64,000 nt of DNA from Blastocladiella emersonii ATCC 22665 (Eukaryota > Fungi > Blastocladiomycota), in contig JANHCV010000005.1 in NCBI GenBank assembly GCA_025594325.1, forward strand, positions 2,046,001-2,110,000, written 5' to 3'. Every line of letters begins with the position of its first letter. Within the stretch, counting starts at the first letter, position 1. The position numbers and the translations under genes are program-made. The notes under the pieces are model-generated. The model was given only the letters and a program-made list of their open reading frames with translations. It had not been told where the DNA came from and made no database searches. Positions 14,807-64,000 of this stretch are shown here, piece after piece.

Positions 14807-15365
14807 GGTCAGGATTTGTTGGCCACCACCCGCCAATCCTGCGGCATGGCTGTGGGTGTCGCTGCATCCATCCGCCTTGGCGGGTGGGGGTGGGTGGTGT
14901 GGTGGTGGCGGGTGTGGGGGCGGCAGTGGTGGTAGTGGAGCTAGAGTGGTGTCGTAGGGCTGGTGGAATCAGTCCCCTCTCCTTCCTGTCTGGCCTAGGT
15001 GGGTGGGCGGACGTAGCGCGCATGCGGGCGGGCAAGGTAGGAACGTTGTTCATGCAATGGATCATGCATTCTATGGCATGTAATCTGCACGACAGAGAGG
15101 GAAGCGACTGTGCCGAATTTTGACCGAGGGACCTTACTGCAGGAAACGTCTAGCCCAATCTGACCCTCCACAAATCGCAACAAGCACGAAACAAATTAGC
15201 CGATGTTTGGGATGTACCAAACCGGCCACGTACATAATTGCCATGGTACTCAAACAAAACTATAATCAAATCTTTGACTTCACGCGTGTCCAGCTAGGCA
15301 GGCTCCTGTAAATCACATTGTCGATGCAAAAACATATCTGTCCATAAGAATATTGTAAACCAGTC
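14807..15365. repeat. Diverged relative of the macrosatellite host sequence, carrying an empty LINE-B target site
   Basis: Aligns by eye, with many substitutions and indels, to 17330-17648 joined to 18917 onward. The uninterrupted site ACCCTCCACAAATCGCA at 15163-15179 differs at 2 of 17 positions from the TSD. It includes one locus-specific 138-bp monomer at 15236. Confidence 0.85.
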
Positions 15366-15859
15366 ACTCTGGCAATTGTCATGGTACTCAAACAAAACCA
15401 TACTCAAATCTATGACTTCCCACATGTCCAGCAGGTTGGACACCCATAAATCACAGTATCAAACCAACAAAATATCAGACCACAGGAGTATATAAAACCG
15501 ACCACGTAGGTAATTGTCTTGGTACTCAAACAAAACCATATTCAAATCTTTCAATTCCCGCTTGTCCAGCTAGCCAGGGACCCATAAATCACAGGATCAC
15601 AGCAACAAAGTATCTGACAACAGAAATATGGTACACCAGCCACGTAGATAATTGTCATGGTACTCAAACAAAACCATACTCAAATCTTCGAGTGCCCCAT
15701 GTCCAGGTGGGCAAGGGCCTATAAATCACAGTATTGAACCAAGAAAATACCTGACGATCGGGATGTATCAAACCCGCCACGCTGATAATTGTCGTGGTAC
15801 TCAAACATAACCATACTCAGCCAAATCTTTGAATACCCTCACGTCCAGGTGGGCAAGGA
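15236..15859. repeat. 138-bp satellite array, flank version (1 locus-specific monomer + monomers 5-8)
   Basis: Monomer starts at 15236, 15374, 15512, 15650 and 15787. Confidence 0.92.
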
Positions 15860-15981
15860 ACCAAAGCGCCAGATATTCAAATCTACCGCTTTGTGCACAC
15901 TCCACTAGCCAACTCTTCGATCCACTAATTATGGAGCCCGTCGTCAAAGTACACTGTCCAATCAACTAAGTAAACAGCCAA

Positions 15982-16083
15982 CCTGCCAGCCTGCCAGCCT
16001 GCCAGCCTGCCAGCCTGCCAGCCTGCCAGCCTGCCAGCCTGCCAGCCTGCCAGCCTGCCAACCTGCCAACCTGCCAACCTGCC
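15982..16083. repeat. Octamer microsatellite (CCTGCCAG)n(CCTGCCAA)3, variable copy number, one per unit
   Basis: 9 G-type + 3 A-type octamers here. Other copies start at 20133 (12), 24285 (9), 28413 (27), 32684, 36835, 40986 (12 each), 45137 and 49248 (7 each), and 53359, 57510, 61661 (12 each). Confidence 0.97.
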
Positions 16084-16966
16084 GCCTTGCCTACCTGCTA
16101 TCCGAACACCCACACCGCCTCGCAAGTCATTGGGGGCCCGCGCTCTCTGGTTGCCGTCCCAGCCAACAAAGGAATGAATGATGAGCCCTGGCAGCCTGGC
16201 AGCCTGCCACACTGACAGCCTGACTGACAGCGCCCACCCAGTAGATATTATCTATCTCGTAGGTAGTCTGGGAGGACTTCGTTAGTCAATACACGACCAG
16301 TCTCCTCCTGGCTGCCGGCTCTGCTGTCCACTCCAAGTCCTGCATGATGATGGGCCAAGGAGGGTTCCGAGCAGCTCCTCTGTCTACCCGCGTGAAACCA
16401 CTCACCCGCTGACGGATGTATACCACGCACCGTGCAGCGCGCACAGCACACAGCGCCCGACGCACCACGCGGTGCGCACACGGCGCAAACGGCCACCCTG
16501 GTGTCACACACACTCGCATGAACGGCAGGCATGCAAGGCGTCCGTCCTCAACTCAACAATGATTTATCATCCAGGCTTACTACTCGCTCCAACGGGTGCG
16601 CCTGCCTGCCCTCCCAGTGCCGTTGATTGATTGATGGGTGCGCCAGCCCCTGTTGCCAGCCACGTGGCAAGCAACACCTCAGCACCTGCGTCGCCCTGGC
16701 CACCGTCCGTACCTTGCAAACAGCGTAGCAGCCGTACTGCTTCACAGGGCTGCAGAGGGCTGGCTGCGGAGGGCTGAGGCGGCAGGGCTCCTCCTGCAGG
16801 AAGGAGACAGTGCTGGGGCCAAGGAGTGCTAGGGACGACAAACTGAATGGTGAATGACCAGACCAACACACCACATGCTCCTGGCAGGAGTGCGTGTGGG
16901 CGTGCGGGCCCGTGTCCGTGCGTGCCTGTGTCTGTGCGTGCCTGGATTAGACCTCCATCACAAGCG

Positions 16967-17061
16967 CCAAGTGACCAAGTGACCAAGTGACAAAGTGACC
17001 AAGGTGACCAAGGTGACCAAGGTGACCAAGGTGACCAGGGTGACCAAGGTGACCAAGTGAC
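16967..17061. repeat. Mixed 8/9-mer minisatellite (CCAAG[G]TGA)x11, one per unit
   Basis: Four 8-mers, six 9-mers and one 8-mer, read directly. It looks identical in all 12 units. Confidence 0.95.
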
Positions 17062-17648
17062 ACACAAGCACCAAGCTAGGGTGGCCGGGCGGCCATGGAC
17101 CGTACTGCATGGGTACCATTACCGTGGACTGGCCGCGGCCATTTATTGCAGCACAGCCCTGCCTGGCTCAGGACGCGGCGGGCGTGGGAGGCGGGCAGGG
17201 TAGATAGGTAGCAGCAGCAGGACCTGGCTAGCTGGCTGTCAAACAACACGAGTGAAGGGGTGCGTGAGGGAGGGTGTGTTGAACGAATGGATGGGTGGAT
17301 GCAGGCAGACCTTCATACGTGTCGTGCGTGATGAGGATTGGTTGGCCACCATCCACCAACGCCATGGCATGGCTGCGGGTGTCGCTGCGTGCGCCTTGGC
17401 GGGTGGTGGTGTTGGTGGGTGGTGTTGGTGGGTGCTGTGGTGGTAGTGGAGCTAAAGTGGTGTTGTGGGGCTCCTGGGGTCCCCTTCCCTTCCTGTCTGG
17501 CCTAGGTGGGTGGGTGGGCGGACGTAGCGCGCATGCGGGCGGGCAAGGTAGGAACGTTGCTCACGCAATGGATCATGTATTTTATGGAACGTAGTCTGCA
17601 CAGCAGAGAGGGGGACGTCCGGCCCAATCGGACCCTCCACGAATCACA

Positions 17649-18900
17649 CCGCGCCGCCGCCTCTGTTGCCGCCGCGGCCGCCGCTAAACGACCAATCGAA
17701 TCTTCTACTACACCACCAACACCACCACCACCACCCGCTACGCTTTCTCCTGTCCATGGCGAGGACCTCAGCACTCCCGGCTACGCCATGGTCGGCGAGT
17801 CCGTTGCTGGCGCGACGCGGTCCCTTGCCTCGTTCGGCCGTCGCCTCCTCGCCTCCATCTGGCGCGACCCCGCCGCTCTGTCTCGCCTCGCCGGCTGCGT
17901 TGTACGCGCCCGCGACGTCGCCTTCGCCTCCCGCTCACTCCAACTCGACCGCGACCTCGCTCGACCCGTCCTCGCGGCCATCACGTCCGTCGCCTCCCGA
18001 TCCCTCTGGCGCGGCGCCTGGCTCTCTCACTCCGCTGGCTGCGCCGAGGCCGACCCACTCGATTCTTCTGAAGCTCCGCCGCGCGAGCCGCGTGAGCGGG
18101 CCCGCCGCCCATTTGGCCAGCCCATTGCCACACTCAAGTTCATCAACCGCCACCACTACTGCTCTCGCTGTCTGAGCTCGCTCCATTCCCACGTCCCCAA
18201 CCCGTCTGGGCGTGAAGAAGACCCGCCAGTGTGCCCGCCGTCCACCGCGGCCCAAGCGGCTCTTGTTGCAGATCCCTCCGTCCGACTTTGGCTGCTCGGT
18301 TCCCCAAGGCACATTCGGTGATGTGACTAGACCAAGGATCGGCGCAGTCGACGCAAGTCCAGTAGCACCAGGTGTTTGCGCGCGGTACTGACCCATCCAC
18401 TTTCTCTCGTTCTGACGACGATGAAACGCATGATCCGCCACTGAATGGCGCTGACGCACAAAAGAAAACGAAGGAGAAAAACAAAAAGAAAAGAAACGCA
18501 AAAAGAAGAATGTCCGCACAAAAAGATGGAAAAACATCTGACGAACCTCACAGGCCATGCCCAAGACCACAGCACTGCCACTGGTCCATTGGCATGTCCT
18601 CGCGCTCTAGTTGGTCACGCCAGCTTGTCTCTCTGCTCGGTCTCTCTTTACTGCGTTTCGTTCGCTCTCTTAGCTCGCTGCTCGAGCTCGCTCTCTCTTC
18701 GCCTCGTTCGCCCATCTCTCTCGTACTCCCCTCTCCTCCCACAATTCTTCCCCCTATGCTCCTCGACGTGCACGGTCCGGGCTTGTCGTACTGCGGCTTG
18801 CCCACAAAAGGGCTGCTGCCCGTTGCACAGTGGATATTCTGCTTGCAGTTCACAACCGCTGTTAAGGAATAAATGCATTGGTTCCAAAAAAAAAAAGAAA
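17649..18900 (+). mobile_element. 5'-truncated non-LTR retrotransposon (LINE copy B) with TSD and poly(A)
   Basis: Flanked by the direct repeat (A)CCCTCCACGAATCACA at 17632-17648 and 18900-18916. Homology to copy A begins exactly after the left TSD. The ORF is open to TGA at 18319-18321 and includes CSRC-x4-HxH..C. AATAAA at 18868-18873, A11 at 18886-18896, then GAAA. Confidence 0.9.
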
Positions 18901-18972
18901 CCCTCCACGAATCACAATATGCGCGCAATGAATTGACCGATGATATGGCCGTACCAAACCAGCCACGTAGAC

Positions 18973-20010
18973 AATTGTCATGGTAGTCGAACAAAACCAT
19001 ATTCAAATCTTGGACTACCCGCTTGTCCAGCTAGCCAGGGACCCATAAATCACAGTATCGACCCAACTAAATATTTGACAGCAGAAATATAGTAAACCAA
19101 CCTCGTACAAAATTGTCATGGTACTCAAACAAAACCATATTCAAAACCTTGACTTCCCGCATATCCAGCTGGCCAGGGACCCATAAATCACAGTATGGAA
19201 CCAACAAAGTATCTGACAACAGAAATATGGTAAAACAGCTACGCGGATAATTGTCATGGTACTCAATCAAAACCATACTCAAACCTTTGCTTTCCTGCAT
19301 GTCCAGCTGGCCACTGACCCATAAATCACAGTATCGGACCAAGAAAATATCTGACCATGGAAATATAGTATACCAGCCACCTAGGTAATTGTCATGGCAC
19401 TCAAACAAAACCATAGTCAAGTCTTTGACTATCCACATGTCCAGCTGATTGAGGACCCATGAATCGTAACGTCAAAGCAACAATATATCTCACCATGGAA
19501 GTAAAGTAAACCAGCCACTCTGGCAATTGTCATGGTACTCAAACAAAACCATACTCAAATCTATGACTTCCCACATGTCCAGCAGGTTGGACACCCATAA
19601 ATCACAGTATCAAACCAACAAAATATCAGACCACAGGAGTATATAAAAGCGACCACGTAGGTAATTGTCTTGGTACTCAAACAAAACCATATTCAAATCT
19701 TTCAATTCCCGCTTGTCCAGCTAGCCAGGGACCCATAAATCACAGGATCACAGCAACAAAGTATCTGACAACAGAAATATGGTACACCAGCCACGTAGAT
19801 AATTGTCATGGTACTCAAACAAAACCATACTCAAATCTTCGAGTGCCCCATGTCCAGGTGGGCAAGGGCCTATAAATCACAGTATTGAACCAAGAAAATA
19901 CCTGACGATCGGGATGTATCAAACCCGCCACGCTGATAATTGTCGTGGTACTCAAACATAACCATACTCAGCCAAATCTTTGAATACCCTCACGTCCAGG
20001 TGGGCAAGGA
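18973..20010. repeat. 138-bp satellite, 8-monomer higher-order array
   Basis: Monomer starts at 18973, 19111, 19249, 19387, 19525, 19663, 19801 and 19938 (six 138-bp steps, then 137; the 8th is partial). Conserved box AATTGTCATGGTACTCAAACAAAACCAT. Monomers 2 and 3 differ at 25 of 138 positions by hand count; monomer 2 is ~41% GC. Confidence 0.96.
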
Positions 20011-21799
20011 ACCAAAGCGCCAGATATTCAAATCTACCGCTTTGTGCACACTCCACTAGCCAACTCTTCGATCCACTAATTATGGAGCCCGTCGTCAAAG
20101 TACACTGTCCAATCAACTAAGTAAACAGCCAACCTGCCAGCCTGCCAGCCTGCCAGCCTGCCAGCCTGCCAGCCTGCCAGCCTGCCAGCCTGCCAGCCTG
20201 CCAGCCTGCCAACCTGCCAACCTGCCAACCTGCCGCCTTGCCTACCTGCTATCCGAACACCCACACCGCCTCGCAAGTCATTGGGGGCCCGCGCTCTCTG
20301 GTTGCCGTCCCAGCCAACAAAGGAATGAATGATGAGCCCTGGCAGCCTGGCAGCCTGCCACACTGACAGCCTGACTGACAGCGCCCACCCAGTAGATATT
20401 ATCTATCTCGTAGGTAGTCTGGGAGGACTTCGTTAGTCAATACACGACCAGTCTCCTCCTGGCTGCCGGCTCTGCTGTCCACTCCAAGTCCTGCATGATG
20501 ATGGGCCAAGGAGGGTTCCGAGCAGCTCCTCTGTCTACCCGCGTGAAACCACTCACCCGCTGACGGATGTATACCACGCACCGTGCAGCGCGCACAGCAC
20601 ACAGCGCCCGACGCACCACGCGGTGCGCACACGGCGCAAACGGCCACCCTGGTGTCACACACACTCGCATGAACGGCAGGCATGCAAGGCGTCCGTCCTC
20701 AACTCAACAATGATTTATCATCCAGGCTTACTACTCGCTCCAACGGGTGCGCCTGCCTGCCCTCCCAGTGCCGTTGATTGATTGATGGGTGCGCCAGCCC
20801 CTGTTGCCAGCCACGTGGCAAGCAACACCTCAGCACCTGCGTCGCCCTGGCCACCGTCCGTACCTTGCAAACAGCGTAGCAGCCGTACTGCTTCACAGGG
20901 CTGCAGAGGGCTGGCTGCGGAGGGCTGAGGCGGCAGGGCTCCTCCTGCAGGAAGGAGACAGTGCTGGGGCCAAGGAGTGCTAGGGACGACAAACTGAATG
21001 GTGAATGACCAGACCAACACACCACATGCTCCTGGCAGGAGTGCGTGTGGGCGTGCGGGCCCGTGTCCGTGCGTGCCTGTGTCTGTGCGTGCCTGGATTA
21101 GACCTCCATCACAAGCGCCAAGTGACCAAGTGACCAAGTGACAAAGTGACCAAGGTGACCAAGGTGACCAAGGTGACCAAGGTGACCAGGGTGACCAAGG
21201 TGACCAAGTGACACACAAGCACCAAGCTAGGGTGGCCGGGCGGCCATGGACCGTACTGCATGGGTACCATTACCGTGGACTGGCCGCGGCCATTTATTGC
21301 AGCACAGCCCTGCCTGGCTCAGGACGCGGCGGGCGTGGGAGGCGGGCAGGGTAGATAGGTAGCAGCAGCAGGACCTGGCTAGCTGGCTGTCAAACAACAC
21401 GAGTGAAGGGGTGCGTGAGGGAGGGTGTGTTGAACGAATGGATGGGTGGATGCAGGCAGACCTTCATACGTGTCGTGCGTGATGAGGATTGGTTGGCCAC
21501 CATCCACCAACGCCATGGCATGGCTGCGGGTGTCGCTGCGTGCGCCTTGGCGGGTGGTGGTGTTGGTGGGTGGTGTTGGTGGGTGCTGTGGTGGTAGTGG
21601 AGCTAAAGTGGTGTTGTGGGGCTCCTGGGGTCCCCTTCCCTTCCTGTCTGGCCTAGGTGGGTGGGTGGGCGGACGTAGCGCGCATGCGGGCGGGCAAGGT
21701 AGGAACGTTGCTCACGCAATGGATCATGTATTTTATGGAACGTAGTCTGCACAGCAGAGAGGGGGACGTCCGGCCCAATCGGACCCTCCACGAATCACA

Positions 21800-23052
21800 C
21801 CGCGCCGCCGCCTCTGTTGCCGCCGCGGCCGCCGCTAAACGACCAATCGAATCTTCTACTACACCACCAACACCACCACCACCACCCGCTACGCTTTCTC
21901 CTGTCCATGGCGAGGACCTCAGCACTCCCGGCTACGCCATGGTCGGCGAGTCCGTTGCTGGCGCGACGCGGTCCCTTGCCTCGTTCGGCCGTCGCCTCCT
22001 CGCCTCCATCTGGCGCGACCCCGCCGCTCTGTCTCGCCTCGCCGGCTGCGTTGTACGCGCCCGCGACGTCGCCTTCGCCTCCCGCTCACTCCAACTCGAC
22101 CGCGACCTCGCTCGACCCGTCCTCGCGGCCATCACGTCCGTCGCCTCCCGATCCCTCTGGCGCGGCGCCTGGCTCTCTCACTCCGCTGGCTGCGCCGAGG
22201 CCGACCCACTCGATTCTTCTGAAGCTCCGCCGCGCGAGCCGCGTGAGCGGGCCCGCCGCCCATTTGGCCAGCCCATTGCCACACTCAAGTTCATCAACCG
22301 CCACCACTACTGCTCTCGCTGTCTGAGCTCGCTCCATTCCCACGTCCCCAACCCGTCTGGGCGTGAAGAAGACCCGCCAGTGTGCCCGCCGTCCACCGCG
22401 GCCCAAGCGGCTCTTGTTGCAGATCCCTCCGTCCGACTTTGGCTGCTCGGTTCCCCAAGGCACATTCGGTGATGTGACTAGACCAAGGATCGGCGCAGTC
22501 GACGCAAGTCCAGTAGCACCAGGTGTTTGCGCGCGGTACTGACCCATCCACTTTCTCTCGTTCTGACGACGATGAAACGCATGATCCGCCACTGAATGGC
22601 GCTGACGCACAAAAGAAAACGAAGGAGAAAAACAAAAAGAAAAGAAACGCAAAAAGAAGAATGTCCGCACAAAAAGATGGAAAAACATCTGACGAACCTC
22701 ACAGGCCATGCCCAAGACCACAGCACTGCCACTGGTCCATTGGCATGTCCTCGCGCTCTAGTTGGTCACGCCAGCTTGTCTCTCTGCTCGGTCTCTCTTT
22801 ACTGCGTTTCGTTCGCTCTCTTAGCTCGCTGCTCGAGCTCGCTCTCTCTTCGCCTCGTTCGCCCATCTCTCTCGTACTCCCCTCTCCTCCCACAATTCTT
22901 CCCCCTATGCTCCTCGACGTGCACGGTCCGGGCTTGTCGTACTGCGGCTTGCCCACAAAAGGGCTGCTGCCCGTTGCACAGTGGATATTCTGCTTGCAGT
23001 TCACAACCGCTGTTAAGGAATAAATGCATTGGTTCCAAAAAAAAAAAAGAAA
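21800..23052 (+). mobile_element. LINE copy B in unit 2
   Basis: Same TSD and sequence as 17649-18900; tail A12. Confidence 0.9.
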
Positions 23053-23124
23053 CCCTCCACGAATCACAATATGCGCGCAATGAATTGACCGATGATATGG
23101 CCGTACCAAACCAGCCACGTAGAC

Positions 23125-27180: not shown

Positions 27181-27252
27181 CCCTCCACGAATCACAATAT
27201 GCGCGCAATGAATTGACCGATGATATGGCCGTACCAAACCAGCCACGTAGAC

Positions 27253-28290: not shown

Positions 28291-30199
28291 ACCAAAGCGC
28301 CAGATATTCAAATCTACCGCTTTGTGCACACTCCACTAGCCAACTCTTCGATCCACTAATTATGGAGCCCGTCGTCAAAGTACACTGTCCAATCAACTAA
28401 GTAAACAGCCAACCTGCCAGCCTGCCAGCCTGCCAGCCTGCCAGCCTGCCAACCTGCCAGCCTGCCAGCCTGCCAGCCTGCCAGCCTGCCAGCCTGCCAG
28501 CCTGCCAGCCTGCCAGCCTGCCAGCCTGCCAGCCTGCCAGCCTGCCAGCCTGCCAGCCTGCCAGCCTGCCAGCCTGCCAGCCTGCCAGCCTGCCAGCCTG
28601 CCAGCCTGCCAACCTGCCAACCTGCCAACCTGCCGCCTTGCCTACCTGCTATCCGAACACCCACACCGCCTCGCAAGTCATTGGGGGCCCGCGCTCTCTG
28701 GTTGCCGTCCCAGCCAACAAAGGAATGAATGATGAGCCCTGGCAGCCTGGCAGCCTGCCACACTGACAGCCTGACTGACAGCGCCCACCCAGTAGATATT
28801 ATCTATCTCGTAGGTAGTCTGGGAGGACTTCGTTAGTCAATACACGACCAGTCTCCTCCTGGCTGCCGGCTCTGCTGTCCACTCCAAGTCCTGCATGATG
28901 ATGGGCCAAGGAGGGTTCCGAGCAGCTCCTCTGTCTACCCGCGTGAAACCACTCACCCGCTGACGGATGTATACCACGCACCGTGCAGCGCGCACAGCAC
29001 ACAGCGCCCGACGCACCACGCGGTGCGCACACGGCGCAAACGGCCACCCTGGTGTCACACACACTCGCATGAACGGCAGGCATGCAAGGCGTCCGTCCTC
29101 AACTCAACAATGATTTATCATCCAGGCTTACTACTCGCTCCAACGGGTGCGCCTGCCTGCCCTCCCAGTGCCGTTGATTGATTGATGGGTGCGCCAGCCC
29201 CTGTTGCCAGCCACGTGGCAAGCAACACCTCAGCACCTGCGTCGCCCTGGCCACCGTCCGTACCTTGCAAACAGCGTAGCAGCCGTACTGCTTCACAGGG
29301 CTGCAGAGGGCTGGCTGCGGAGGGCTGAGGCGGCAGGGCTCCTCCTGCAGGAAGGAGACAGTGCTGGGGCCAAGGAGTGCTAGGGACGACAAACTGAATG
29401 GTGAATGACCAGACCAACACACCACATGCTCCTGGCAGGAGTGCGTGTGGGCGTGCGGGCCCGTGTCCGTGCGTGCCTGTGTCTGTGCGTGCCTGGATTA
29501 GACCTCCATCACAAGCGCCAAGTGACCAAGTGACCAAGTGACAAAGTGACCAAGGTGACCAAGGTGACCAAGGTGACCAAGGTGACCAGGGTGACCAAGG
29601 TGACCAAGTGACACACAAGCACCAAGCTAGGGTGGCCGGGCGGCCATGGACCGTACTGCATGGGTACCATTACCGTGGACTGGCCGCGGCCATTTATTGC
29701 AGCACAGCCCTGCCTGGCTCAGGACGCGGCGGGCGTGGGAGGCGGGCAGGGTAGATAGGTAGCAGCAGCAGGACCTGGCTAGCTGGCTGTCAAACAACAC
29801 GAGTGAAGGGGTGCGTGAGGGAGGGTGTGTTGAACGAATGGATGGGTGGATGCAGGCAGACCTTCATACGTGTCGTGCGTGATGAGGATTGGTTGGCCAC
29901 CATCCACCAACGCCATGGCATGGCTGCGGGTGTCGCTGCGTGCGCCTTGGCGGGTGGTGGTGTTGGTGGGTGGTGTTGGTGGGTGCTGTGGTGGTAGTGG
30001 AGCTAAAGTGGTGTTGTGGGGCTCCTGGGGTCCCCTTCCCTTCCTGTCTGGCCTAGGTGGGTGGGTGGGCGGACGTAGCGCGCATGCGGGCGGGCAAGGT
30101 AGGAACGTTGCTCACGCAATGGATCATGTATTTTATGGAACGTAGTCTGCACAGCAGAGAGGGGGACGTCCGGCCCAATCGGACCCTCCACGAATCACA

Positions 30200-31451: not shown

Positions 31452-31523
31452 CCCTCCACGAATCACAATATGCGCGCAATGAATTGACCGATGATATGGC
31501 CGTACCAAACCAGCCACGTAGAC

Positions 31524-32561
31524 AATTGTCATGGTAGTCGAACAAAACCATATTCAAATCTTGGACTACCCGCTTGTCCAGCTAGCCAGGGACCCATAAA
31601 TCACAGTATCGACCCAACTAAATATTTGACAGCAGAAATATAGTAAACCAACCTCGTACAAAATTGTCATGGTACTCAAACAAAACCATATTCAAAACCT
31701 TGACTTCCCGCATATCCAGCTGGCCAGGGACCCATAAATCACAGTATGGAACCAACAAAGTATCTGACAACAGAAATATGGTAAAACAGCTACGCGGATA
31801 ATTGTCATGGTACTCAATCAAAACCATACTCAAACCTTTGCTTTCCTGCATGTCCAGCTGGCCACTGACCCATAAATCACAGTATCGGACCAAGAAAATA
31901 TCTGACCATGGAAATATAGTATACCAGCCACCTAGGTAATTGTCATGGCACTCAAACAAAACCATAGTCAAGTCTTTGACTATCCACATGTCCAGCTGAT
32001 TGAGGACCCATGAATCGTAACGTCAAAGCAACAATATATCTCACCATGGAAGTAAAGTAAACCAGCCACTCTGGCAATTGTCATGGTACTCAAACAAAAC
32101 CATACTCAAATCTATGACTTCCCACATGTCCAGCAGGTTGGACACCCATAAATCACAGTATCAAACCAACAAAATATCAGACCACAGGAGTATATAAAAG
32201 CGACCACGTAGGTAATTGTCTTGGTACTCAAACAAAACCATATTCAAATCTTTCAATTCCCGCTTGTCCAGCTAGCCAGGGACCCATAAATCACAGGATC
32301 ACAGCAACAAAGTATCTGACAACAGAAATATGGTACACCAGCCACGTAGATAATTGTCATGGTACTCAAACAAAACCATACTCAAATCTTCGAGTGCCCC
32401 ATGTCCAGGTGGGCAAGGGCCTATAAATCACAGTATTGAACCAAGAAAATACCTGACGATCGGGATGTATCAAACCCGCCACGCTGATAATTGTCGTGGT
32501 ACTCAAACATAACCATACTCAGCCAAATCTTTGAATACCCTCACGTCCAGGTGGGCAAGGA
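31524..32561. repeat. 138-bp satellite 8-mer array
   Basis: Near-identical copy. Confidence 0.95.
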
Positions 32562-34350
32562 ACCAAAGCGCCAGATATTCAAATCTACCGCTTTGTGCAC
32601 ACTCCACTAGCCAACTCTTCGATCCACTAATTATGGAGCCCGTCGTCAAAGTACACTGTCCAATCAACTAAGTAAACAGCCAACCTGCCAGCCTGCCAGC
32701 CTGCCAGCCTGCCAGCCTGCCAGCCTGCCAGCCTGCCAGCCTGCCAGCCTGCCAGCCTGCCAACCTGCCAACCTGCCAACCTGCCGCCTTGCCTACCTGC
32801 TATCCGAACACCCACACCGCCTCGCAAGTCATTGGGGGCCCGCGCTCTCTGGTTGCCGTCCCAGCCAACAAAGGAATGAATGATGAGCCCTGGCAGCCTG
32901 GCAGCCTGCCACACTGACAGCCTGACTGACAGCGCCCACCCAGTAGATATTATCTATCTCGTAGGTAGTCTGGGAGGACTTCGTTAGTCAATACACGACC
33001 AGTCTCCTCCTGGCTGCCGGCTCTGCTGTCCACTCCAAGTCCTGCATGATGATGGGCCAAGGAGGGTTCCGAGCAGCTCCTCTGTCTACCCGCGTGAAAC
33101 CACTCACCCGCTGACGGATGTATACCACGCACCGTGCAGCGCGCACAGCACACAGCGCCCGACGCACCACGCGGTGCGCACACGGCGCAAACGGCCACCC
33201 TGGTGTCACACACACTCGCATGAACGGCAGGCATGCAAGGCGTCCGTCCTCAACTCAACAATGATTTATCATCCAGGCTTACTACTCGCTCCAACGGGTG
33301 CGCCTGCCTGCCCTCCCAGTGCCGTTGATTGATTGATGGGTGCGCCAGCCCCTGTTGCCAGCCACGTGGCAAGCAACACCTCAGCACCTGCGTCGCCCTG
33401 GCCACCGTCCGTACCTTGCAAACAGCGTAGCAGCCGTACTGCTTCACAGGGCTGCAGAGGGCTGGCTGCGGAGGGCTGAGGCGGCAGGGCTCCTCCTGCA
33501 GGAAGGAGACAGTGCTGGGGCCAAGGAGTGCTAGGGACGACAAACTGAATGGTGAATGACCAGACCAACACACCACATGCTCCTGGCAGGAGTGCGTGTG
33601 GGCGTGCGGGCCCGTGTCCGTGCGTGCCTGTGTCTGTGCGTGCCTGGATTAGACCTCCATCACAAGCGCCAAGTGACCAAGTGACCAAGTGACAAAGTGA
33701 CCAAGGTGACCAAGGTGACCAAGGTGACCAAGGTGACCAGGGTGACCAAGGTGACCAAGTGACACACAAGCACCAAGCTAGGGTGGCCGGGCGGCCATGG
33801 ACCGTACTGCATGGGTACCATTACCGTGGACTGGCCGCGGCCATTTATTGCAGCACAGCCCTGCCTGGCTCAGGACGCGGCGGGCGTGGGAGGCGGGCAG
33901 GGTAGATAGGTAGCAGCAGCAGGACCTGGCTAGCTGGCTGTCAAACAACACGAGTGAAGGGGTGCGTGAGGGAGGGTGTGTTGAACGAATGGATGGGTGG
34001 ATGCAGGCAGACCTTCATACGTGTCGTGCGTGATGAGGATTGGTTGGCCACCATCCACCAACGCCATGGCATGGCTGCGGGTGTCGCTGCGTGCGCCTTG
34101 GCGGGTGGTGGTGTTGGTGGGTGGTGTTGGTGGGTGCTGTGGTGGTAGTGGAGCTAAAGTGGTGTTGTGGGGCTCCTGGGGTCCCCTTCCCTTCCTGTCT
34201 GGCCTAGGTGGGTGGGTGGGCGGACGTAGCGCGCATGCGGGCGGGCAAGGTAGGAACGTTGCTCACGCAATGGATCATGTATTTTATGGAACGTAGTCTG
34301 CACAGCAGAGAGGGGGATGTCCGGCCCAATCGGACCCTCCACGAATCACA

Positions 34351-35602
34351 CCGCGCCGCCGCCTCTGTTGCCGCCGCGGCCGCCGCTAAACGACCAATCG
34401 AATCTTCTACTACACCACCAACACCACCACCACCACCCGCTACGCTTTCTCCTGTCCATGGCGAGGACCTCAGCACTCCCGGCTACGCCATGGTCGGCGA
34501 GTCCGTTGCTGGCGCGACGCGGTCCCTTGCCTCGTTCGGCCGTCGCCTCCTCGCCTCCATCTGGCGCGACCCCGCCGCTCTGTCTCGCCTCGCCGGCTGC
34601 GTTGTACGCGCCCGCGACGTCGCCTTCGCCTCCCGCTCACTCCAACTCGACCGCGACCTCGCTCGACCCGTCCTCGCGGCCATCACGTCCGTCGCCTCCC
34701 GATCCCTCTGGCGCGGCGCCTGGCTCTCTCACTCCGCTGGCTGCGCCGAGGCCGACCCACTCGATTCTTCTGAAGCTCCGCCGCGCGAGCCGCGTGAGCG
34801 GGCCCGCCGCCCATTTGGCCAGCCCATTGCCACACTCAAGTTCATCAACCGCCACCACTACTGCTCTCGCTGTCTGAGCTCGCTCCATTCCCACGTCCCC
34901 AACCCGTCTGGGCGTGAAGAAGACCCGCCAGTGTGCCCGCCGTCCACCGCGGCCCAAGCGGCTCTTGTTGCAGATCCCTCCGTCCGACTTTGGCTGCTCG
35001 GTTCCCCAAGGCACATTCGGTGATGTGACTAGACCAAGGATCGGCGCAGTCGACGCAAGTCCAGTAGCACCAGGTGTTTGCGCGCGGTACTGACCCATCC
35101 ACTTTCTCTCGTTCTGACGACGATGAAACGCATGATCCGCCACTGAATGGCGCTGACGCACAAAAGAAAACGAAGGAGAAAAACAAAAAGAAAAGAAACG
35201 CAAAAAGAAGAATGTCCGCACAAAAAGATGGAAAAACATCTGACGAACCTCACAGGCCATGCCCAAGACCACAGCACTGCCACTGGTCCATTGGCATGTC
35301 CTCGCGCTCTAGTTGGTCACGCCAGCTTGTCTCTCTGCTCGGTCTCTCTTTACTGCGTTTCGTTCGCTCTCTTAGCTCGCTGCTCGAGCTCGCTCTCTCT
35401 TCGCCTCGTTCGCCCATCTCTCTCGTACTCCCCTCTCCTCCCACAATTCTTCCCCCTATGCTCCTCGACGTGCACGGTCCGGGCTTGTCGTACTGCGGCT
35501 TGCCCACAAAAGGGCTGCTGCCCGTTGCACAGTGGATATTCTGCTTGCAGTTCACAACCGCTGTTAAGGAATAAATGCATTGGTTCCAAAAAAAAAAAGA
35601 AA
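34351..35602 (+). mobile_element. LINE copy B in unit 5
   Basis: Same TSD; tail A11. Confidence 0.9.
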
Positions 35603-35674
35603 CCCTCCACGAATCACAATATGCGCGCAATGAATTGACCGATGATATGGCCGTACCAAACCAGCCACGTAGAC

Positions 35675-43904: not shown

Positions 43905-43976
43905 CCCTCCACGAATCACAATATGCGCGCAATGAATTGACCGATGATATGGCCGTACCAAACCAGCCACGTAGAC

Positions 43977-48015: not shown

Positions 48016-48087
48016 CCCTCCACGAATCACAATATGCGCGCAATGAATTGACCGATGATATGGCCGTACCAAACCAGCCACGTAGAC

Positions 48088-52126: not shown

Positions 52127-52198
52127 CCCTCCACGAATCACAATATGCGCGCAATGAATTGACCGATGATATGGCCGTACCAAACCAGCCACGTAGAC

Positions 52199-55025: not shown

Positions 55026-56277
55026 CCGCGCCGCCGCCTCTGTTGCCGCCGCGGCCGCCGCTAAACGACCAATCGAATCTTCTACTACACCACCAACACC
55101 ACCACCACCACCCGCTACGCTTTCTCCTGTCCATGGCGAGGACCTCAGCACTCCCGGCTACGCCATGGTCGGCGAGTCCGTTGCTGGCGCGACGCGGTCC
55201 CTTGCCTCGTTCGGCCGTCGCCTCCTCGCCTCCATCTGGCGCGACCCCGCCGCTCTGTCTCGCCTCGCCGGCTGCGTTGTACGCGCCCGCGACGTCGCCT
55301 TCGCCTCCCGCTCACTCCAACTCGACCGCGACCTCGCTCGACCCGTCCTCGCGGCCATCACGTCCGTCGCCTCCCGATCCCTCTGGCGCGGCGCCTGGCT
55401 CTCTCACTCCGCTGGCTGCGCCGAGGCCGACCCACTCGATTCTTCTGAAGCTCCGCCGCGCGAGCCGCGTGAGCGGGCCCGCCGCCCATTTGGCCAGCCC
55501 ATTGCCACACTCAAGTTCATCAACCGCCACCACTACTGCTCTCGCTGTCTGAGCTCGCTCCATTCCCACGTCCCCAACCCGTCTGGGCGTGAAGAAGACC
55601 CGCCAGTGTGCCCGCCGTCCACCGCGGCCCAAGCGGCTCTTGTTGCAGATCCCTCCGTCCGACTTTGGCTGCTCGGTTCCCCAAGGCACATTCGGTGATG
55701 TGACTAGACCAAGGATCGGCGCAGTCGACGCAAGTCCAGTAGCACCAGGTGTTTGCGCGCGGTACTGACCCATCCACTTTCTCTCGTTCTGACGACGATG
55801 AAACGCATGATCCGCCACTGAATGGCGCTGACGCACAAAAGAAAACGAAGGAGAAAAACAAAAAGAAAAGAAACGCAAAAAGAAGAATGTCCGCACAAAA
55901 AGATGGAAAAACATCTGACGAACCTCACAGGCCATGCCCAAGACCACAGCACTGCCACTGGTCCATTGGCATGTCCTCGCGCTCTAGTTGGTCACGCCAG
56001 CTTGTCTCTCTGCTCGGTCTCTCTTTACTGCGTTTCGTTCGCTCTCTTAGCTCGCTGCTCGAGCTCGCTCTCTCTTCGCCTCGTTCGCCCATCTCTCTCG
56101 TACTCCCCTCTCCTCCCACAATTCTTCCCCCTATGCTCCTCGACGTGCACGGTCCGGGCTTGTCGTACTGCGGCTTGCCCACAAAAGGGCTGCTGCCCGT
56201 TGCACAGTGGATATTCTGCTTGCAGTTCACAACCGCTGTTAAGGAATAAATGCATTGGTTCCAAAAAAAAAAAGAAA
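55026..56277 (+). mobile_element. LINE copy B in unit 10
   Basis: Same TSD; tail A11. Confidence 0.9.
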
Positions 56278-56349
56278 CCCTCCACGAATCACAATATGCG
56301 CGCAATGAATTGACCGATGATATGGCCGTACCAAACCAGCCACGTAGAC

Positions 56350-57387
56350 AATTGTCATGGTAGTCGAACAAAACCATATTCAAATCTTGGACTACCCGCT
56401 TGTCCAGCTAGCCAGGGACCCATAAATCACAGTATCGACCCAACTAAATATTTGACAGCAGAAATATAGTAAACCAACCTCGTACAAAATTGTCATGGTA
56501 CTCAAACAAAACCATATTCAAAACCTTGACTTCCCGCATATCCAGCTGGCCAGGGACCCATAAATCACAGTATGGAACCAACAAAGTATCTGACAACAGA
56601 AATATGGTAAAACAGCTACGCGGATAATTGTCATGGTACTCAATCAAAACCATACTCAAACCTTTGCTTTCCTGCATGTCCAGCTGGCCACTGACCCATA
56701 AATCACAGTATCGGACCAAGAAAATATCTGACCATGGAAATATAGTATACCAGCCACCTAGGTAATTGTCATGGCACTCAAACAAAACCATAGTCAAGTC
56801 TTTGACTATCCACATGTCCAGCTGATTGAGGACCCATGAATCGTAACGTCAAAGCAACAATATATCTCACCATGGAAGTATAGTAAACCAGCCACTCTGG
56901 CAATTGTCATGGTACTCAAACAAAACCATACTCAAATCTATGACTTCCCACATGTCCAGCAGGTTGGACACCCATAAATCACAGTATCAAACCAACAAAA
57001 TATCAGACCACAGGAGTATATAAAAGCGACCACGTAGGTAATTGTCTTGGTACTCAAACAAAACCATATTCAAATCTTTCAATTCCCGCTTGTCCAGCTA
57101 GCCAGGGACCCATAAATCACAGGATCACAGCAACAAAGTATCTGACAACAGAAATATGGTACACCAGCCACGTAGATAATTGTCATGGTACTCAAACAAA
57201 ACCATACTCAAATCTTCGAGTGCCCCATGTCCAGGTGGGCAAGGGCCTATAAATCACAGTATTGAACCAAGAAAATACCTGACGATCGGGATGTATCAAA
57301 CCCGCCACGCTGATACTTGTCGTGGTACTCAAACATAACCATACTCAGCCAAATCTTTGAATACCCTCACGTCCAGGTGGGCAAGGA
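56350..57387. repeat. 138-bp satellite 8-mer array
   Basis: Near-identical copy. Confidence 0.95.
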
Positions 57388-59176
57388 ACCAAAGCGCCAG
57401 ATATTCAAATCTACCGCTTTGTGCACACTCCACTAGCCAACTCTTCGATCCACTAATTATGGAGCCCGTCGTCAAAGTACACTGTCCAATCAACTAAGTA
57501 AACAGCCAACCTGCCAGCCTGCCAGCCTGCCAGCCTGCCAGCCTGCCAGCCTGCCAGCCTGCCAGCCTGCCAGCCTGCCAGCCTGCCAACCTGCCAACCT
57601 GCCAACCTGCCGCCTTGCCTACCTGCTATCCGAACACCCACACCGCCTCGCAAGTCATTGGGGGCCCGCGCTCTCTGGTTGCCGTCCCAGCCAACAAAGG
57701 AATGAATGATGAGCCCTGGCAGCCTGGCAGCCTGCCACACTGACAGCCTGACTGACAGCGCCCACCCAGTAGATATTATCTATCTCGTAGGTAGTCTGGG
57801 AGGACTTCGTTAGTCAATACACGACCAGTCTCCTCCTGGCTGCCGGCTCTGCTGTCCACTCCAAGTCCTGCATGATGATGGGCCAAGGAGGGTTCCGAGC
57901 AGCTCCTCTGTCTACCCGCGTGAAACCACTCACCCGCTGACGGATGTATACCACGCACCGTGCAGCGCGCACAGCACACAGCGCCCGACGCACCACGCGG
58001 TGCGCACACGGCGCAAACGGCCACCCTGGTGTCACACACACTCGCATGAACGGCAGGCATGCAAGGCGTCCGTCCTCAACTCAACAATGATTTATCATCC
58101 AGGCTTACTACTCGCTCCAACGGGTGCGCCTGCCTGCCCTCCCAGTGCCGTTGATTGATTGATGGGTGCGCCAGCCCCTGTTGCCAGCCACGTGGCAAGC
58201 AACACCTCAGCACCTGCGTCGCCCTGGCCACCGTCCGTACCTTGCAAACAGCGTAGCAGCCGTACTGCTTCACAGGGCTGCAGAGGGCTGGCTGCGGAGG
58301 GCTGAGGCGGCAGGGCTCCTCCTGCAGGAAGGAGACAGTGCTGGGGCCAAGGAGTGCTAGGGACGACAAACTGAATGGTGAATGACCAGACCAACACACC
58401 ACATGCTCCTGGCAGGAGTGCGTGTGGGCGTGCGGGCCCGTGTCCGTGCGTGCCTGTGTCTGTGCGTGCCTGGATTAGACCTCCATCACAAGCGCCAAGT
58501 GACCAAGTGACCAAGTGACAAAGTGACCAAGGTGACCAAGGTGACCAAGGTGACCAAGGTGACCAGGGTGACCAAGGTGACCAAGTGACACACAAGCACC
58601 AAGCTAGGGTGGCCGGGCGGCCATGGACCGTACTGCATGGGTACCATTACCGTGGACTGGCCGCGGCCATTTATTGCAGCACAGCCCTGCCTGGCTCAGG
58701 ACGCGGCGGGCGTGGGAGGCGGGCAGGGTAGATAGGTAGCAGCAGCAGGACCTGGCTAGCTGGCTGTCAAACAACACGAGTGAAGGGGTGCGTGAGGGAG
58801 GGTGTGTTGAACGAATGGATGGGTGGATGCAGGCAGACCTTCATACGTGTCGTGCGTGATGAGGATTGGTTGGCCACCATCCACCAACGCCATGGCATGG
58901 CTGCGGGTGTCGCTGCGTGCGCCTTGGCGGGTGGTGGTGTTGGTGGGTGGTGTTGGTGGGTGCTGTGGTGGTAGTGGAGCTAAAGTGGTGTTGTGGGGCT
59001 CCTGGGGTCCCCTTCCCTTCCTGTCTGGCCTAGGTGGGTGGGTGGGCGGACGTAGCGCGCATGCGGGCGGGCAAGGTAGGAACGTTGCTCACGCAATGGA
59101 TCATGTATTTTATGGAACGTAGTCTGCACAGCAGAGAGGGGGATGTCCGGCCCAATCGGACCCTCCACGAATCACA

Positions 59177-60428
59177 CCGCGCCGCCGCCTCTGTTGCCGC
59201 CGCGGCCGCCGCTAAACGACCAATCGAATCTTCTACTACACCACCAACACCACCACCACCACCCGCTACGCTTTCTCCTGTCCATGGCGAGGACCTCAGC
59301 ACTCCCGGCTACGCCATGGTCGGCGAGTCCGTTGCTGGCGCGACGCGGTCCCTTGCCTCGTTCGGCCGTCGCCTCCTCGCCTCCATCTGGCGCGACCCCG
59401 CCGCTCTGTCTCGCCTCGCCGGCTGCGTTGTACGCGCCCGCGACGTCGCCTTCGCCTCCCGCTCACTCCAACTCGACCGCGACCTCGCTCGACCCGTCCT
59501 CGCGGCCATCACGTCCGTCGCCTCCCGATCCCTCTGGCGCGGCGCCTGGCTCTCTCACTCCGCTGGCTGCGCCGAGGCCGACCCACTCGATTCTTCTGAA
59601 GCTCCGCCGCGCGAGCCGCGTGAGCGGGCCCGCCGCCCATTTGGCCAGCCCATTGCCACACTCAAGTTCATCAACCGCCACCACTACTGCTCTCGCTGTC
59701 TGAGCTCGCTCCATTCCCACGTCCCCAACCCGTCTGGGCGTGAAGAAGACCCGCCAGTGTGCCCGCCGTCCACCGCGGCCCAAGCGGCTCTTGTTGCAGA
59801 TCCCTCCGTCCGACTTTGGCTGCTCGGTTCCCCAAGGCACATTCGGTGATGTGACTAGACCAAGGATCGGCGCAGTCGACGCAAGTCCAGTAGCACCAGG
59901 TGTTTGCGCGCGGTACTGACCCATCCACTTTCTCTCGTTCTGACGACGATGAAACGCATGATCCGCCACTGAATGGCGCTGACGCACAAAAGAAAACGAA
60001 GGAGAAAAACAAAAAGAAAAGAAACGCAAAAAGAAGAATGTCCGCACAAAAAGATGGAAAAACATCTGACGAACCTCACAGGCCATGCCCAAGACCACAG
60101 CACTGCCACTGGTCCATTGGCATGTCCTCGCGCTCTAGTTGGTCACGCCAGCTTGTCTCTCTGCTCGGTCTCTCTTTACTGCGTTTCGTTCGCTCTCTTA
60201 GCTCGCTGCTCGAGCTCGCTCTCTCTTCGCCTCGTTCGCCCATCTCTCTCGTACTCCCCTCTCCTCCCACAATTCTTCCCCCTATGCTCCTCGACGTGCA
60301 CGGTCCGGGCTTGTCGTACTGCGGCTTGCCCACAAAAGGGCTGCTGCCCGTTGCACAGTGGATATTCTGCTTGCAGTTCACAACCGCTGTTAAGGAATAA
60401 ATGCATTGGTTCCAAAAAAAAAAAGAAA
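59177..60428 (+). mobile_element. LINE copy B in unit 11
   Basis: Same TSD; tail A11. Confidence 0.9.
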
Positions 60429-60500
60429 CCCTCCACGAATCACAATATGCGCGCAATGAATTGACCGATGATATGGCCGTACCAAACCAGCCACGTAGAC

Positions 60501-61538
60501 AATTGTCATGGTAGTCGAACAAAACCATATTCAAATCTTGGACTACCCGCTTGTCCAGCTAGCCAGGGACCCATAAATCACAGTATCGACCCAACTAAAT
60601 ATTTGACAGCAGAAATATAGTAAACCAACCTCGTACAAAATTGTCATGGTACTCAAACAAAACCATATTCAAAACCTTGACTTCCCGCATATCCAGCTGG
60701 CCAGGGACCCATAAATCACAGTATGGAACCAACAAAGTATCTGACAACAGAAATATGGTAAAACAGCTACGCGGATAATTGTCATGGTACTCAATCAAAA
60801 CCATACTCAAACCTTTGCTTTCCTGCATGTCCAGCTGGCCACTGACCCATAAATCACAGTATCGGACCAAGAAAATATCTGACCATGGAAATATAGTATA
60901 CCAGCCACCTAGGTAATTGTCATGGCACTCAAACAAAACCATAGTCAAGTCTTTGACTATCCACATGTCCAGCTGATTGAGGACCCATGAATCGTAACGT
61001 CAAAGCAACAATATATCTCACCATGGAAGTATAGTAAACCAGCCACTCTGGCAATTGTCATGGTACTCAAACAAAACCATACTCAAATCTATGACTTCCC
61101 ACATGTCCAGCAGGTTGGACACCCATAAATCACAGTATCAAACCAACAAAATATCAGACCACAGGAGTATATAAAACCGACCACGTAGGTAATTGTCTTG
61201 GTACTCAAACAAAACCATATTCAAATCTTTCAATTCCCGCTTGTCCAGCTAGCCAGGGACCCATAAATCACAGGATCACAGCAACAAAGTATCTGACAAC
61301 AGAAATATGGTACACCAGCCACGTAGATAATTGTCATGGTACTCAAACAAAACCATACTCAAATCTTCGAGTGCCCCATGTCCAGGTGGGCAAGGGCCTA
61401 TAAATCACAGTATTGAACCAAGAAAATACCTGACGATCGGGATGTATCAAACCCGCCACGCTGATACTTGTCGTGGTACTCAAACATAACCATACTCAGC
61501 CAAATCTTTGAATACCCTCACGTCCAGGTGGGCAAGGA
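60501..61538. repeat. 138-bp satellite 8-mer array
   Basis: Near-identical copy; has C61177, the allele otherwise seen only at 15498. Confidence 0.95.
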
Positions 61539-63327
61539 ACCAAAGCGCCAGATATTCAAATCTACCGCTTTGTGCACACTCCACTAGCCAACTCTTCGAT
61601 CCACTAATTATGGAGCCCGTCGTCAAAGTACACTGTCCAATCAACTAAGTAAACAGCCAACCTGCCAGCCTGCCAGCCTGCCAGCCTGCCAGCCTGCCAG
61701 CCTGCCAGCCTGCCAGCCTGCCAGCCTGCCAGCCTGCCAACCTGCCAACCTGCCAACCTGCCGCCTTGCCTACCTGCTATCCGAACACCCACACCGCCTC
61801 GCAAGTCATTGGGGGCCCGCGCTCTCTGGTTGCCGTCCCAGCCAACAAAGGAATGAATGATGAGCCCTGGCAGCCTGGCAGCCTGCCACACTGACAGCCT
61901 GACTGACAGCGCCCACCCAGTAGATATTATCTATCTCGTAGGTAGTCTGGGAGGACTTCGTTAGTCAATACACGACCAGTCTCCTCCTGGCTGCCGGCTC
62001 TGCTGTCCACTCCAAGTCCTGCATGATGATGGGCCAAGGAGGGTTCCGAGCAGCTCCTCTGTCTACCCGCGTGAAACCACTCACCCGCTGACGGATGTAT
62101 ACCACGCACCGTGCAGCGCGCACAGCACACAGCGCCCGACGCACCACGCGGTGCGCACACGGCGCAAACGGCCACCCTGGTGTCACACACACTCGCATGA
62201 ACGGCAGGCATGCAAGGCGTCCGTCCTCAACTCAACAATGATTTATCATCCAGGCTTACTACTCGCTCCAACGGGTGCGCCTGCCTGCCCTCCCAGTGCC
62301 GTTGATTGATTGATGGGTGCGCCAGCCCCTGTTGCCAGCCACGTGGCAAGCAACACCTCAGCACCTGCGTCGCCCTGGCCACCGTCCGTACCTTGCAAAC
62401 AGCGTAGCAGCCGTACTGCTTCACAGGGCTGCAGAGGGCTGGCTGCGGAGGGCTGAGGCGGCAGGGCTCCTCCTGCAGGAAGGAGACAGTGCTGGGGCCA
62501 AGGAGTGCTAGGGACGACAAACTGAATGGTGAATGACCAGACCAACACACCACATGCTCCTGGCAGGAGTGCGTGTGGGCGTGCGGGCCCGTGTCCGTGC
62601 GTGCCTGTGTCTGTGCGTGCCTGGATTAGACCTCCATCACAAGCGCCAAGTGACCAAGTGACCAAGTGACAAAGTGACCAAGGTGACCAAGGTGACCAAG
62701 GTGACCAAGGTGACCAGGGTGACCAAGGTGACCAAGTGACACACAAGCACCAAGCTAGGGTGGCCGGGCGGCCATGGACCGTACTGCATGGGTACCATTA
62801 CCGTGGACTGGCCGCGGCCATTTATTGCAGCACAGCCCTGCCTGGCTCAGGACGCGGCGGGCGTGGGAGGCGGGCAGGGTAGATAGGTAGCAGCAGCAGG
62901 ACCTGGCTAGCTGGCTGTCAAACAACACGAGTGAAGGGGTGCGTGAGGGAGGGTGTGTTGAACGAATGGATGGGTGGATGCAGGCAGACCTTCATACGTG
63001 TCGTGCGTGATGAGGATTGGTTGGCCACCATCCACCAACGCCATGGCATGGCTGCGGGTGTCGCTGCGTGCGCCTTGGCGGGTGGTGGTGTTGGTGGGTG
63101 GTGTTGGTGGGTGCTGTGGTGGTAGTGGAGCTAAAGTGGTGTTGTGGGGCTCCTGGGGTCCCCTTCCCTTCCTGTCTGGCCTAGGTGGGTGGGTGGGCGG
63201 ACGTAGCGCGCATGCGGGCGGGCAAGGTAGGAACGTTGCTCACGCAATGGATCATGTATTTTATGGAACGTAGTCTGCACAGCAGAGAGGGGGATGTCCG
63301 GCCCAATCGGACCCTCCACGAATCACA

Positions 63328-64000
63328 CCGCGCCGCCGCCTCTGTTGCCGCCGCGGCCGCCGCTAAACGACCAATCGAATCTTCTACTACACCACCAACA
63401 CCACCACCACCACCCGCTACGCTTTCTCCTGTCCATGGCGAGGACCTCAGCACTCCCGGCTACGCCATGGTCGGCGAGTCCGTTGCTGGCGCGACGCGGT
63501 CCCTTGCCTCGTTCGGCCGTCGCCTCCTCGCCTCCATCTGGCGCGACCCCGCCGCTCTGTCTCGCCTCGCCGGCTGCGTTGTACGCGCCCGCGACGTCGC
63601 CTTCGCCTCCCGCTCACTCCAACTCGACCGCGACCTCGCTCGACCCGTCCTCGCGGCCATCACGTCCGTCGCCTCCCGATCCCTCTGGCGCGGCGCCTGG
63701 CTCTCTCACTCCGCTGGCTGCGCCGAGGCCGACCCACTCGATTCTTCTGAAGCTCCGCCGCGCGAGCCGCGTGAGCGGGCCCGCCGCCCATTTGGCCAGC
63801 CCATTGCCACACTCAAGTTCATCAACCGCCACCACTACTGCTCTCGCTGTCTGAGCTCGCTCCATTCCCACGTCCCCAACCCGTCTGGGCGTGAAGAAGA
63901 CCCGCCAGTGTGCCCGCCGTCCACCGCGGCCCAAGCGGCTCTTGTTGCAGATCCCTCCGTCCGACTTTGGCTGCTCGGTTCCCCAAGGCACATTCGGTGA
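63328..64000 (+). mobile_element. LINE copy B in unit 12 (cut by window edge)
   Basis: Left TSD and ORF are present up to the stop codon at the window end. Confidence 0.88.

Follow-up and report, generated by a model that had tools for sequence, protein, structure and literature searches.

Fungal centromeres have usually been described as point, small regional, AT-rich or transposon-rich, and retroelements accumulate at the edges of homogenised centromeric arrays. In the early-diverging fungus Mucor circinelloides, mosaic centromeres are flanked by a family of long interspersed nuclear elements (LINEs), Grem-LINE1 (Navarro-Mendoza et al. 2019; bioRxiv 10.1101/706580), an arrangement that resembles the one reported here. 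For Blastocladiomycota, our literature search found no centromere of any kind, nor any description of the arrays presented below, and the published assembly paper is silent on centromeres and satellites (PMC9730499). In this study, we analysed a stretch of 64,000 nucleotides from Blastocladiella emersonii ATCC 22665 (C17:2046001-2110000; "the window" hereafter means this whole stretch) and searched the genome of 32.65 Mb in 21 contigs (computed N50 2.02 Mb, L50 6). Most of the window is occupied by a macrosatellite array. We consider that this array most likely marks the regional centromere, of satellite type, of its chromosome, with a probability of roughly 0.55. It belongs to a set of seven related arrays which, judged from their sequence organisation, are the best candidates for repeat-built centromeres in B. 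emersonii.

The macrosatellite array of contig C17

The tandem block on C17 is real and non-coding. Its extent and the anatomy of one reference unit are as follows.

15221..64000, + strand: macrosatellite array of 11.75 head-to-tail units of 4110-4271 bp, running on for about 100 kb past the window
28408..28638, + strand: expanded (GCCAGCCT)n run of 29 copies, in the third unit only (4271 bp long)
31507..35657, + strand: reference unit, 4151 bp, GC 55.9%
31507..32565, + strand: monomer block, seven complete 138-bp monomers and one partial copy (repeat finder, alignment and profile search)
32679..32789, + strand: (GCCAGCCT)n microsatellite, with a copy number per unit that runs from 9 to 29, the chief cause of unit-length variation
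33669..33763, + strand: (CCAAGGTGA)n microsatellite, about 11 copies
33867..33887, + strand: 21-mer marker GGCTCAGGACGCGGCGGGCGT, once per unit and common to all sister arrays
34334..34350, + strand: 5' copy of the target-site duplication, ACCCTCCACGAATCACA (17 bp)
34351..35601, + strand: 5'-truncated LINE insert of 1251 bp, comprising the last ~100 codons of the open reading frame, the 3' untranslated region and the poly-A tail
35602..35618, + strand: 3' copy of the 17-bp target-site duplication

A sequence-only reading of this DNA had proposed at least 11.7 head-to-tail units of about 4.15 kb with three nested scales of repetition. The nesting was recovered by the tandem repeat finder: from 15219 to the end of the window, the 138-bp arrays (7.4 copies in each unit, 78% matches) and the (GCCAGCCT)n and (CCAAGGTGA)n microsatellites return every ~4151 bp. 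An exact 40-mer anchor recurred at intervals of 4152, 4128, 4271, 4151 (three times), 4111 (twice) and 4151 bp (twice). The start of the array had been placed at 15365; a BLAST alignment of a single unit to the left-hand part of the window moves it to 15221, where the array is entered at unit position 417. The units were said to differ very little, and this holds: within the window, the differences amount to eight single-base columns and the length of the octamer run. That run has 9-14 copies in the units other than the third, whose 29 copies are the largest length variant seen in the array.

The array continues well beyond the window. C17 is 2,209,773 bp long, and matches to a unit probe and to the once-per-unit marker follow one another at ~4.1-kb intervals as far as 2,208,776, giving an array of at least 148.5 kb and ~36 units, of which the window holds the left third. 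The contig terminates mid-unit, without a telomere repeat, so the measured length is a lower bound set by the assembly. Across the whole 148 kb, eighteen complete units were sampled, and these are 99.93% identical. Ten variable columns among them show positional gradients, adjacent units being more alike than distant ones, which indicates a real and locally homogenised array. The order of unit lengths along the array is non-periodic.

Alignment showed that the monomers are 71-86% identical to one another, and the GC content of their block is 42%, against about 61% elsewhere and in the flanks. Three boxes, AATTGTCATGG, CAAAACCATA and CCCATAAATCAC, are conserved in 55 monomers taken from C17, C19, C4, C5, C9 and C16, which represent five arrays; a search of metagenome contigs with a monomer box gave no match. 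In the profile search, monomers were confined to unit positions 1-1059 of 4151, with one faint relic at 4101-4136, and the unit is therefore that of a complex macrosatellite in which monomers form one block, and not a higher-order repeat built purely of monomers. A unit made wholly of tandem monomers, as in alpha satellite, is not what this search found. Unit positions 1060-2827 are non-monomeric and consist of 1.8 kb of non-coding DNA including both microsatellites.

Several observations agreed that the unit does not code. Between the C17 unit and the unit of the C19 array, seven of eight indels are not multiples of three, and substitutions fall 21/18/15 on the three codon positions, without phase. 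Open frames reach 271 aa, and the longest are no longer than in shuffled sequence. A Pfam search of 13 open frames from the unit and the left flank found no domain within the unit, neither the gathering threshold nor a cut-off of E<=1 gave an Rfam match in the unit, and a tRNA scan of it found none. The unit thus does not carry the rRNA, 5S or tRNA gene that an array of RNA genes would have in every unit. Broken frames, missing codon phase, shuffle-length frames and the empty Pfam, Rfam and tRNA results together indicate a non-coding unit, in line with the earlier statement that the array holds no recognisable host gene.

The embedded truncated LINE had also been seen from the letters alone, and the identification stands. 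The insert occupies unit positions 2845-4095, the 17-bp duplication around it is perfect, and the same target site is empty in the units of the C19 sister array. It is 97.1% identical to the 3' end of an intact copy on another contig:

within C21:503201-509700 (positions 1133-6130 of that stretch), - strand: full-length LINE with an open frame of 1666 aa

The frame of this copy is uninterrupted and encodes Exo_endo_phos, RVT_1 and RNase_H domains, and the family may still be active. The full-length relative thus supplies endonuclease and reverse transcriptase, and the insert itself shows the poly-A tail, the duplication and the 5' truncation of a LINE lacking long terminal repeats (non-LTR). 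An element of the R2/CRE/NeSL type with a restriction-like endonuclease was considered and ruled out by the N-terminal Exo_endo_phos and C-terminal RNase H domains of the relative; this domain set indicates an apurinic-endonuclease LINE, of which the insert is a 5'-truncated copy.

Among the arrays whose units were read, only that of C17 carries the LINE inside every unit. The divergence between units is 40-fold below that between the insert and the intact copy and, as the insert is present in every unit, this indicates that insertion preceded amplification. An ancestral unit of ~2.9 kb, composed of the monomer block, non-coding DNA and two microsatellites, gained one LINE by target-primed reverse transcription, and amplification of this enlarged 4.15-kb unit followed, which is now 99.93% uniform along at least 148 kb. 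The C17 array therefore records a dated event, a LINE insertion 3% away from its intact copy that spread through at least 36 units now 0.07% apart.

Sister arrays, their edges and their place on the chromosomes

The marker GGCTCAGGACGCGGCGGGCGT has 12 matches in the window, against 0 expected. Allowing up to two mismatches, it has 318 matches genome-wide, against 3 for a reversed control. Two refined patterns and samples of the contig ends showed that essentially all 318 are explained by seven related arrays.

Array 1: C2 end + C5 start, unit 3124 bp, about 263 kb
Array 2: C7 end + C4 start, unit 2766 bp, about 119 kb
Array 3: C20 end + C19 start, units 3049 / 2635 bp, halves 99.8% identical
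Array 4: C11 end + C10 end, unit about 3330 bp
Array 5: C21 end + C6 end
Array 6: C9 end + C16 start, at least 276 kb
Array 7: C17 end, unit 4151 bp, at least 148.5 kb, unpaired

The orientation is consistent in each of the six contig pairs. The assembled arrays measure 43-276 kb, and each is ended by a contig end. The C17 unit is 94% identical to those of C19/C20 in its non-monomer part and 90% in the monomer block; its identity is 90% to C4, 80-91% to C9 and about 79-80% to C5 and C6/C21. Identity is thus 99.9% within an array and 79-94% between arrays, and on C17 we find a long gene-free tandem array that is uniform within its chromosome (99.93%) and diverged from those of the others (79-94%). 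Monomers of different arrays align best in register and their order is conserved, and it is therefore the whole unit, not the monomer, that is homogenised.

Two contigs were tried as the missing partner of C17 and rejected. The array of C19 is 99.8% identical to that at the end of C20, and the monomers at the start of C16 match those of C9 (95.8%), not those of C17 (83%). No other contig among the candidates scored has the unit-LINE junction of C17, and none has a matching right edge. The published assembly pipeline trimmed contig overlaps (PMC9730499), and this trimming may have removed the missing right half of the C17 array.

Long AAACCT telomere repeats stand only at the starts of C2 and C11. 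TTAGGG telomere repeats are absent from the genome, AAACCT repeats are missing from both the window and the end of C17, and all seven arrays lie at contig ends without telomere repeats. Other contig ends share one of two elements. The first is common to the ends of C4, C15 and C16 and the start of C20, with an identical terminal 60-mer. The second is found at the ends of C5 and C3 and the starts of C21 and C6; here the terminal 60-mers of C5 and C21 are identical, the copy on C3 has diverged and that on C6 is ~1.5 kb in from the contig end. These shared elements are probably subtelomeric sequences beside unassembled telomeres and so would mark chromosome ends. It fits this reading that, for ten further contigs, the assembly graph yielded telomere motifs at one end (PMC9730499).

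The far ends of the array contigs bear either AAACCT repeats (C2, C11) or one of the shared elements (C4, C16, C20, C5, C21, C6), which indicates that the paired arrays are internal and not subtelomeric. A subtelomeric repeat adjoining (AAACCT)n and common to many chromosome ends was not what we found, the termini sharing the other elements instead. If the elements are read in this way, C2+C5 and C21+C6 would be complete chromosomes of ~3 Mb, and each of these pairs has a single array, at a distance of 1.2-1.7 Mb from both ends. For the remaining paired arrays, the known end is more than 1.4 Mb away, and all six sister arrays are more than 1.1 Mb from the identified ends. The C17 array has 2.06 Mb of unique contig on its left side. 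In the literature on the karyotype of Blastocladiella we found nothing to set beside these figures.

Some further contig ends have features of their own. The start of C1, the largest contig (5.14 Mb), resembles tRNA gene sequence. C12 (58,780 bp) may be a palindromic or fold-back contig, as its first and last 60 bases are exact reverse complements of each other. C13 (32,196 bp) begins in (CTG)n and ends in (CAG)n; the starts of C10 and C18 also lie in CTG/CAG runs, which suggests that some assembly breaks fall at trinucleotide repeats.

The left flank of the C17 array contains the following features.

2947..6556, - strand: exons of a glycogen debranching enzyme (Pfam hGDE_central, hDGE_amylase with E 5.7e-151, hGDE_N)
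7163..12384, + strand: intersectin-like gene, the last before the array, with two EH, two SH3, RhoGEF, PH and C2 domains in three consecutive open frames (Pfam)
12796..14805, + strand: internally deleted remnant from an older LINE subfamily, with the poly-A (3') end toward the array
14811..15220, + strand: diverged "fossil" unit piece, 82% identical to unit positions 2530-2808, with an empty LINE target site

The full domain order of the intersectin-like gene is best known from animals. The LINE remnant is 79-83% identical to the intact LINE copy and 92.5-94.6% identical to copies at the array edges of C20, C19 and C16; 11 of the 13 genome copies that are 88-95% identical to it sit at satellite-array edges. 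The two close copies away from the edges, at C4:170313-171589 and C19:311167-311979, might be relics of former arrays. In the fossil piece, a single copy of the target motif is followed by monomers.

The 3' end of the LINE is directed at the array in 10 of 12 mapped edges. At the left edge of C7, a young LINE copy stands in place of the older subfamily, and at C19:32677 the LINE directly abuts the array. At the right edge of the C9/C16 array (positions 355-433 of the stretch sampled from the C16 start), an inverted unit piece of ~80 bp with an empty LINE target site separates the inward-facing LINE from the last monomers. Inverted copying of left edges may have given rise to the right edges. 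The junction lies at unit position ~2530 on C17, ~8 bp before monomer 1 on C20 and at ~1128 on C19. This variation suggests that the edges do not descend from one inherited boundary, and we infer that the edge LINEs are separate insertions or rearrangements that survive where homogenisation is weak.

Kinetochore genes and the possible roles of the arrays

Genes for the inner kinetochore were found elsewhere in the genome. A CENP-C cupin domain lies at C16:633010-633261 (80.6 bits), inside an open frame of 1644 aa. Besides four canonical H3 genes, there are two divergent ones, the first of which is a candidate for the centromeric histone H3 (CenH3).

C15:561588-562077, - strand: CenH3-like H3 variant (candidate), with a non-H3 tail, an intron and a loop 1 two residues longer
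C1:3640470-3640884, + strand: second divergent H3-like gene, with a loop-1 insertion of ~25 residues and 38% identity to H3

The C15 variant is 61% identical to H3 in the histone fold, and the scores of its first exon against CENP-A chimeras, Cnp1 and H3 are roughly the same. A histone-fold match on C21, in an open frame of 521 aa, was considered as a long-tailed CenH3 and rejected, as it reads as an NF-YC-type protein. The CENP-C domain and the CenH3-like variant make a conventional CenH3-based kinetochore plausible in this genome.

The case for a centromere is built on the seven arrays, their chromosome-specific homogenisation, their position in mid-chromosome, the single array of each apparently complete chromosome, the absence of genes, the retroelement-capped edges and the inner-kinetochore genes. 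The sequence-only reading had left the choice between a centromere and a chromosome end. A satellite centromere is favoured by seven arrays homogenised each in itself, six of them recovered as contig pairs; the chromosome end fares worse, having no AAACCT repeat, and the presumed ends bear other elements. On the proposed mechanism, unequal exchange or gene conversion within each array would keep its units uniform. The arrays of the other chromosomes each retain variants of their own, and LINE copies persist at the edges. The gene-free homogeneous array, with its relatively AT-rich monomers of near-nucleosome length, would serve as a platform for CenH3 (CENP-A) nucleosomes and CENP-C, and the centromere would be maintained epigenetically, like the satellite centromeres of animals and plants.

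A number of points weigh against this interpretation. The monomers make up only 25% of the C17 unit and 36% of the ancestral 2.9-kb unit; they gave no signal of dyad symmetry (z = -0.23), and their folding is no better than that of shuffled sequence. The nearest genes lie within 2.9 kb of the array, without a broad pericentric repeat zone. The right flank of the C17 array is absent from the assembly, with no partner contig. Five contigs, C1, C3, C8, C15 and C18 (11.9 Mb), are unplaced and have no array, and one array per chromosome is shown for two contig pairs only. In addition, the literature on fungal centromeres that we searched describes no satellite-built ones.

That last point, with the minority share of the monomers in the unit, also speaks for the alternative which we consider most seriously, namely an interstitial macrosatellite without centromeric function, knob-like or comparable to D4Z4/DXZ4, that grew by unequal exchange and broke the assembly, the centromeres lying elsewhere. 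It predicts the same array structure as a centromere does. However, seven chromosome-specific arrays in mid-chromosome, one per fully ended contig pair, are centromere-like and not expected of ordinary macrosatellites, and we regard this explanation as possible but doubtful. It is improbable that the C17 array is a subtelomeric block running into an unassembled telomere. The contig does stop mid-unit with neither a partner junction nor a right edge, C19 being paired with C20 instead, but AAACCT is missing from the window and the contig end, and the true-looking termini bear two other elements. The six sister arrays are each spread over two matching contigs, so unique DNA flanks them on both sides, and the overlap trimming (PMC9730499) could have removed the partner's part of the array.

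Two other explanations concern the nature of the block itself. The retroelement fragment in the unit and open frames of up to 271 aa might suggest repeated functional genes, encoding small proteins or non-coding RNA, or else a mobile element amplified in tandem; against this stand the lack of Rfam, tRNA and Pfam matches and frames that are of shuffle length and broken by indels, and the LINE piece is a dead 3' end missing from the sister arrays, which makes such an array quite unlikely. We think it very unlikely that a few copies were wrongly expanded, or their order scrambled, by the assembly. Units of 4.15 kb that are 99.93% identical are hard to order with reads of ~10.5 kb (PMC9730499), and the contig ends inside the array, but the left junction with unique DNA is clean, ten single-nucleotide columns run in gradients, the unit lengths are non-periodic and the same architecture is seen in six sister arrays.

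Taken together, the data favour a satellite-type centromere as the reading of the C17 array. The wider proposal that all seven arrays are working CenH3-bound centromeres, the first satellite-built and chromosome-specific ones in fungi, with a LINE family that inserts at their edges or survives only there, has in our view about an even chance of being right. If it is, a culturable, flagellated fungus from an early-diverging lineage would share the centromere organisation of animals and plants, and repeat-based centromeres would be either ancestral to animals and fungi or have re-arisen in a flagellated fungus. Homogenisation, centromere drive and retroelement targeting could then be tested in a 33-Mb genome with arrays that, as assembled, are far below primate size.

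Comparison with known satellite systems

The human D4Z4 and DXZ4 macrosatellites share with the C17 array GC-rich units of kilobase size, long homogeneous arrays and a copy number varied by unequal exchange. The human satellites do not occur once per chromosome and are not centromeric, and D4Z4 bears a gene; here the arrays are gene-free, with one array per contig pair.

The analogy with primate alpha satellite, which the sequence-only reading had drawn, holds in part. As in alpha-satellite higher-order repeats, diverged monomers of near-nucleosome length (138 bp, 71-86% identical) lie inside near-identical units (99.93%), and there are chromosome-specific variants. Homogenisation is likewise strongest inside the array, LINEs are kept at the edges, and there may be one array per chromosome, as in the two contig pairs with both ends identified. 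The analogy fails in the composition of the unit, where monomers account for 25% of the C17 sequence and the rest is unique non-coding DNA and microsatellites, and in the order of monomers, which is conserved between arrays on different chromosomes. The scale also differs, with 43-276 kb assembled here against megabases in primates and genes within 3 kb of the array, and the arrays of B. emersonii are candidate centromeres only.

In plant satellite centromeres, such as CentO with CRR and CEN180 with ATHILA, satellite arrays are tied to one retroelement family, and an insertion can be carried along by homogenisation, as happened to the LINE of the C17 unit. The element differs: instead of a chromovirus it is a non-LTR LINE that encodes endonuclease, reverse transcriptase and RNase H. 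It sits chiefly at array edges, the 3' end pointing inward, and in the C17 array also in every unit. In this preference for the edges, the candidate centromeres of B. emersonii come close to those of M. circinelloides; compared with that fungus, the present genome keeps CENP-C and a CenH3-like histone, and its candidate arrays extend over 43-276 kb.

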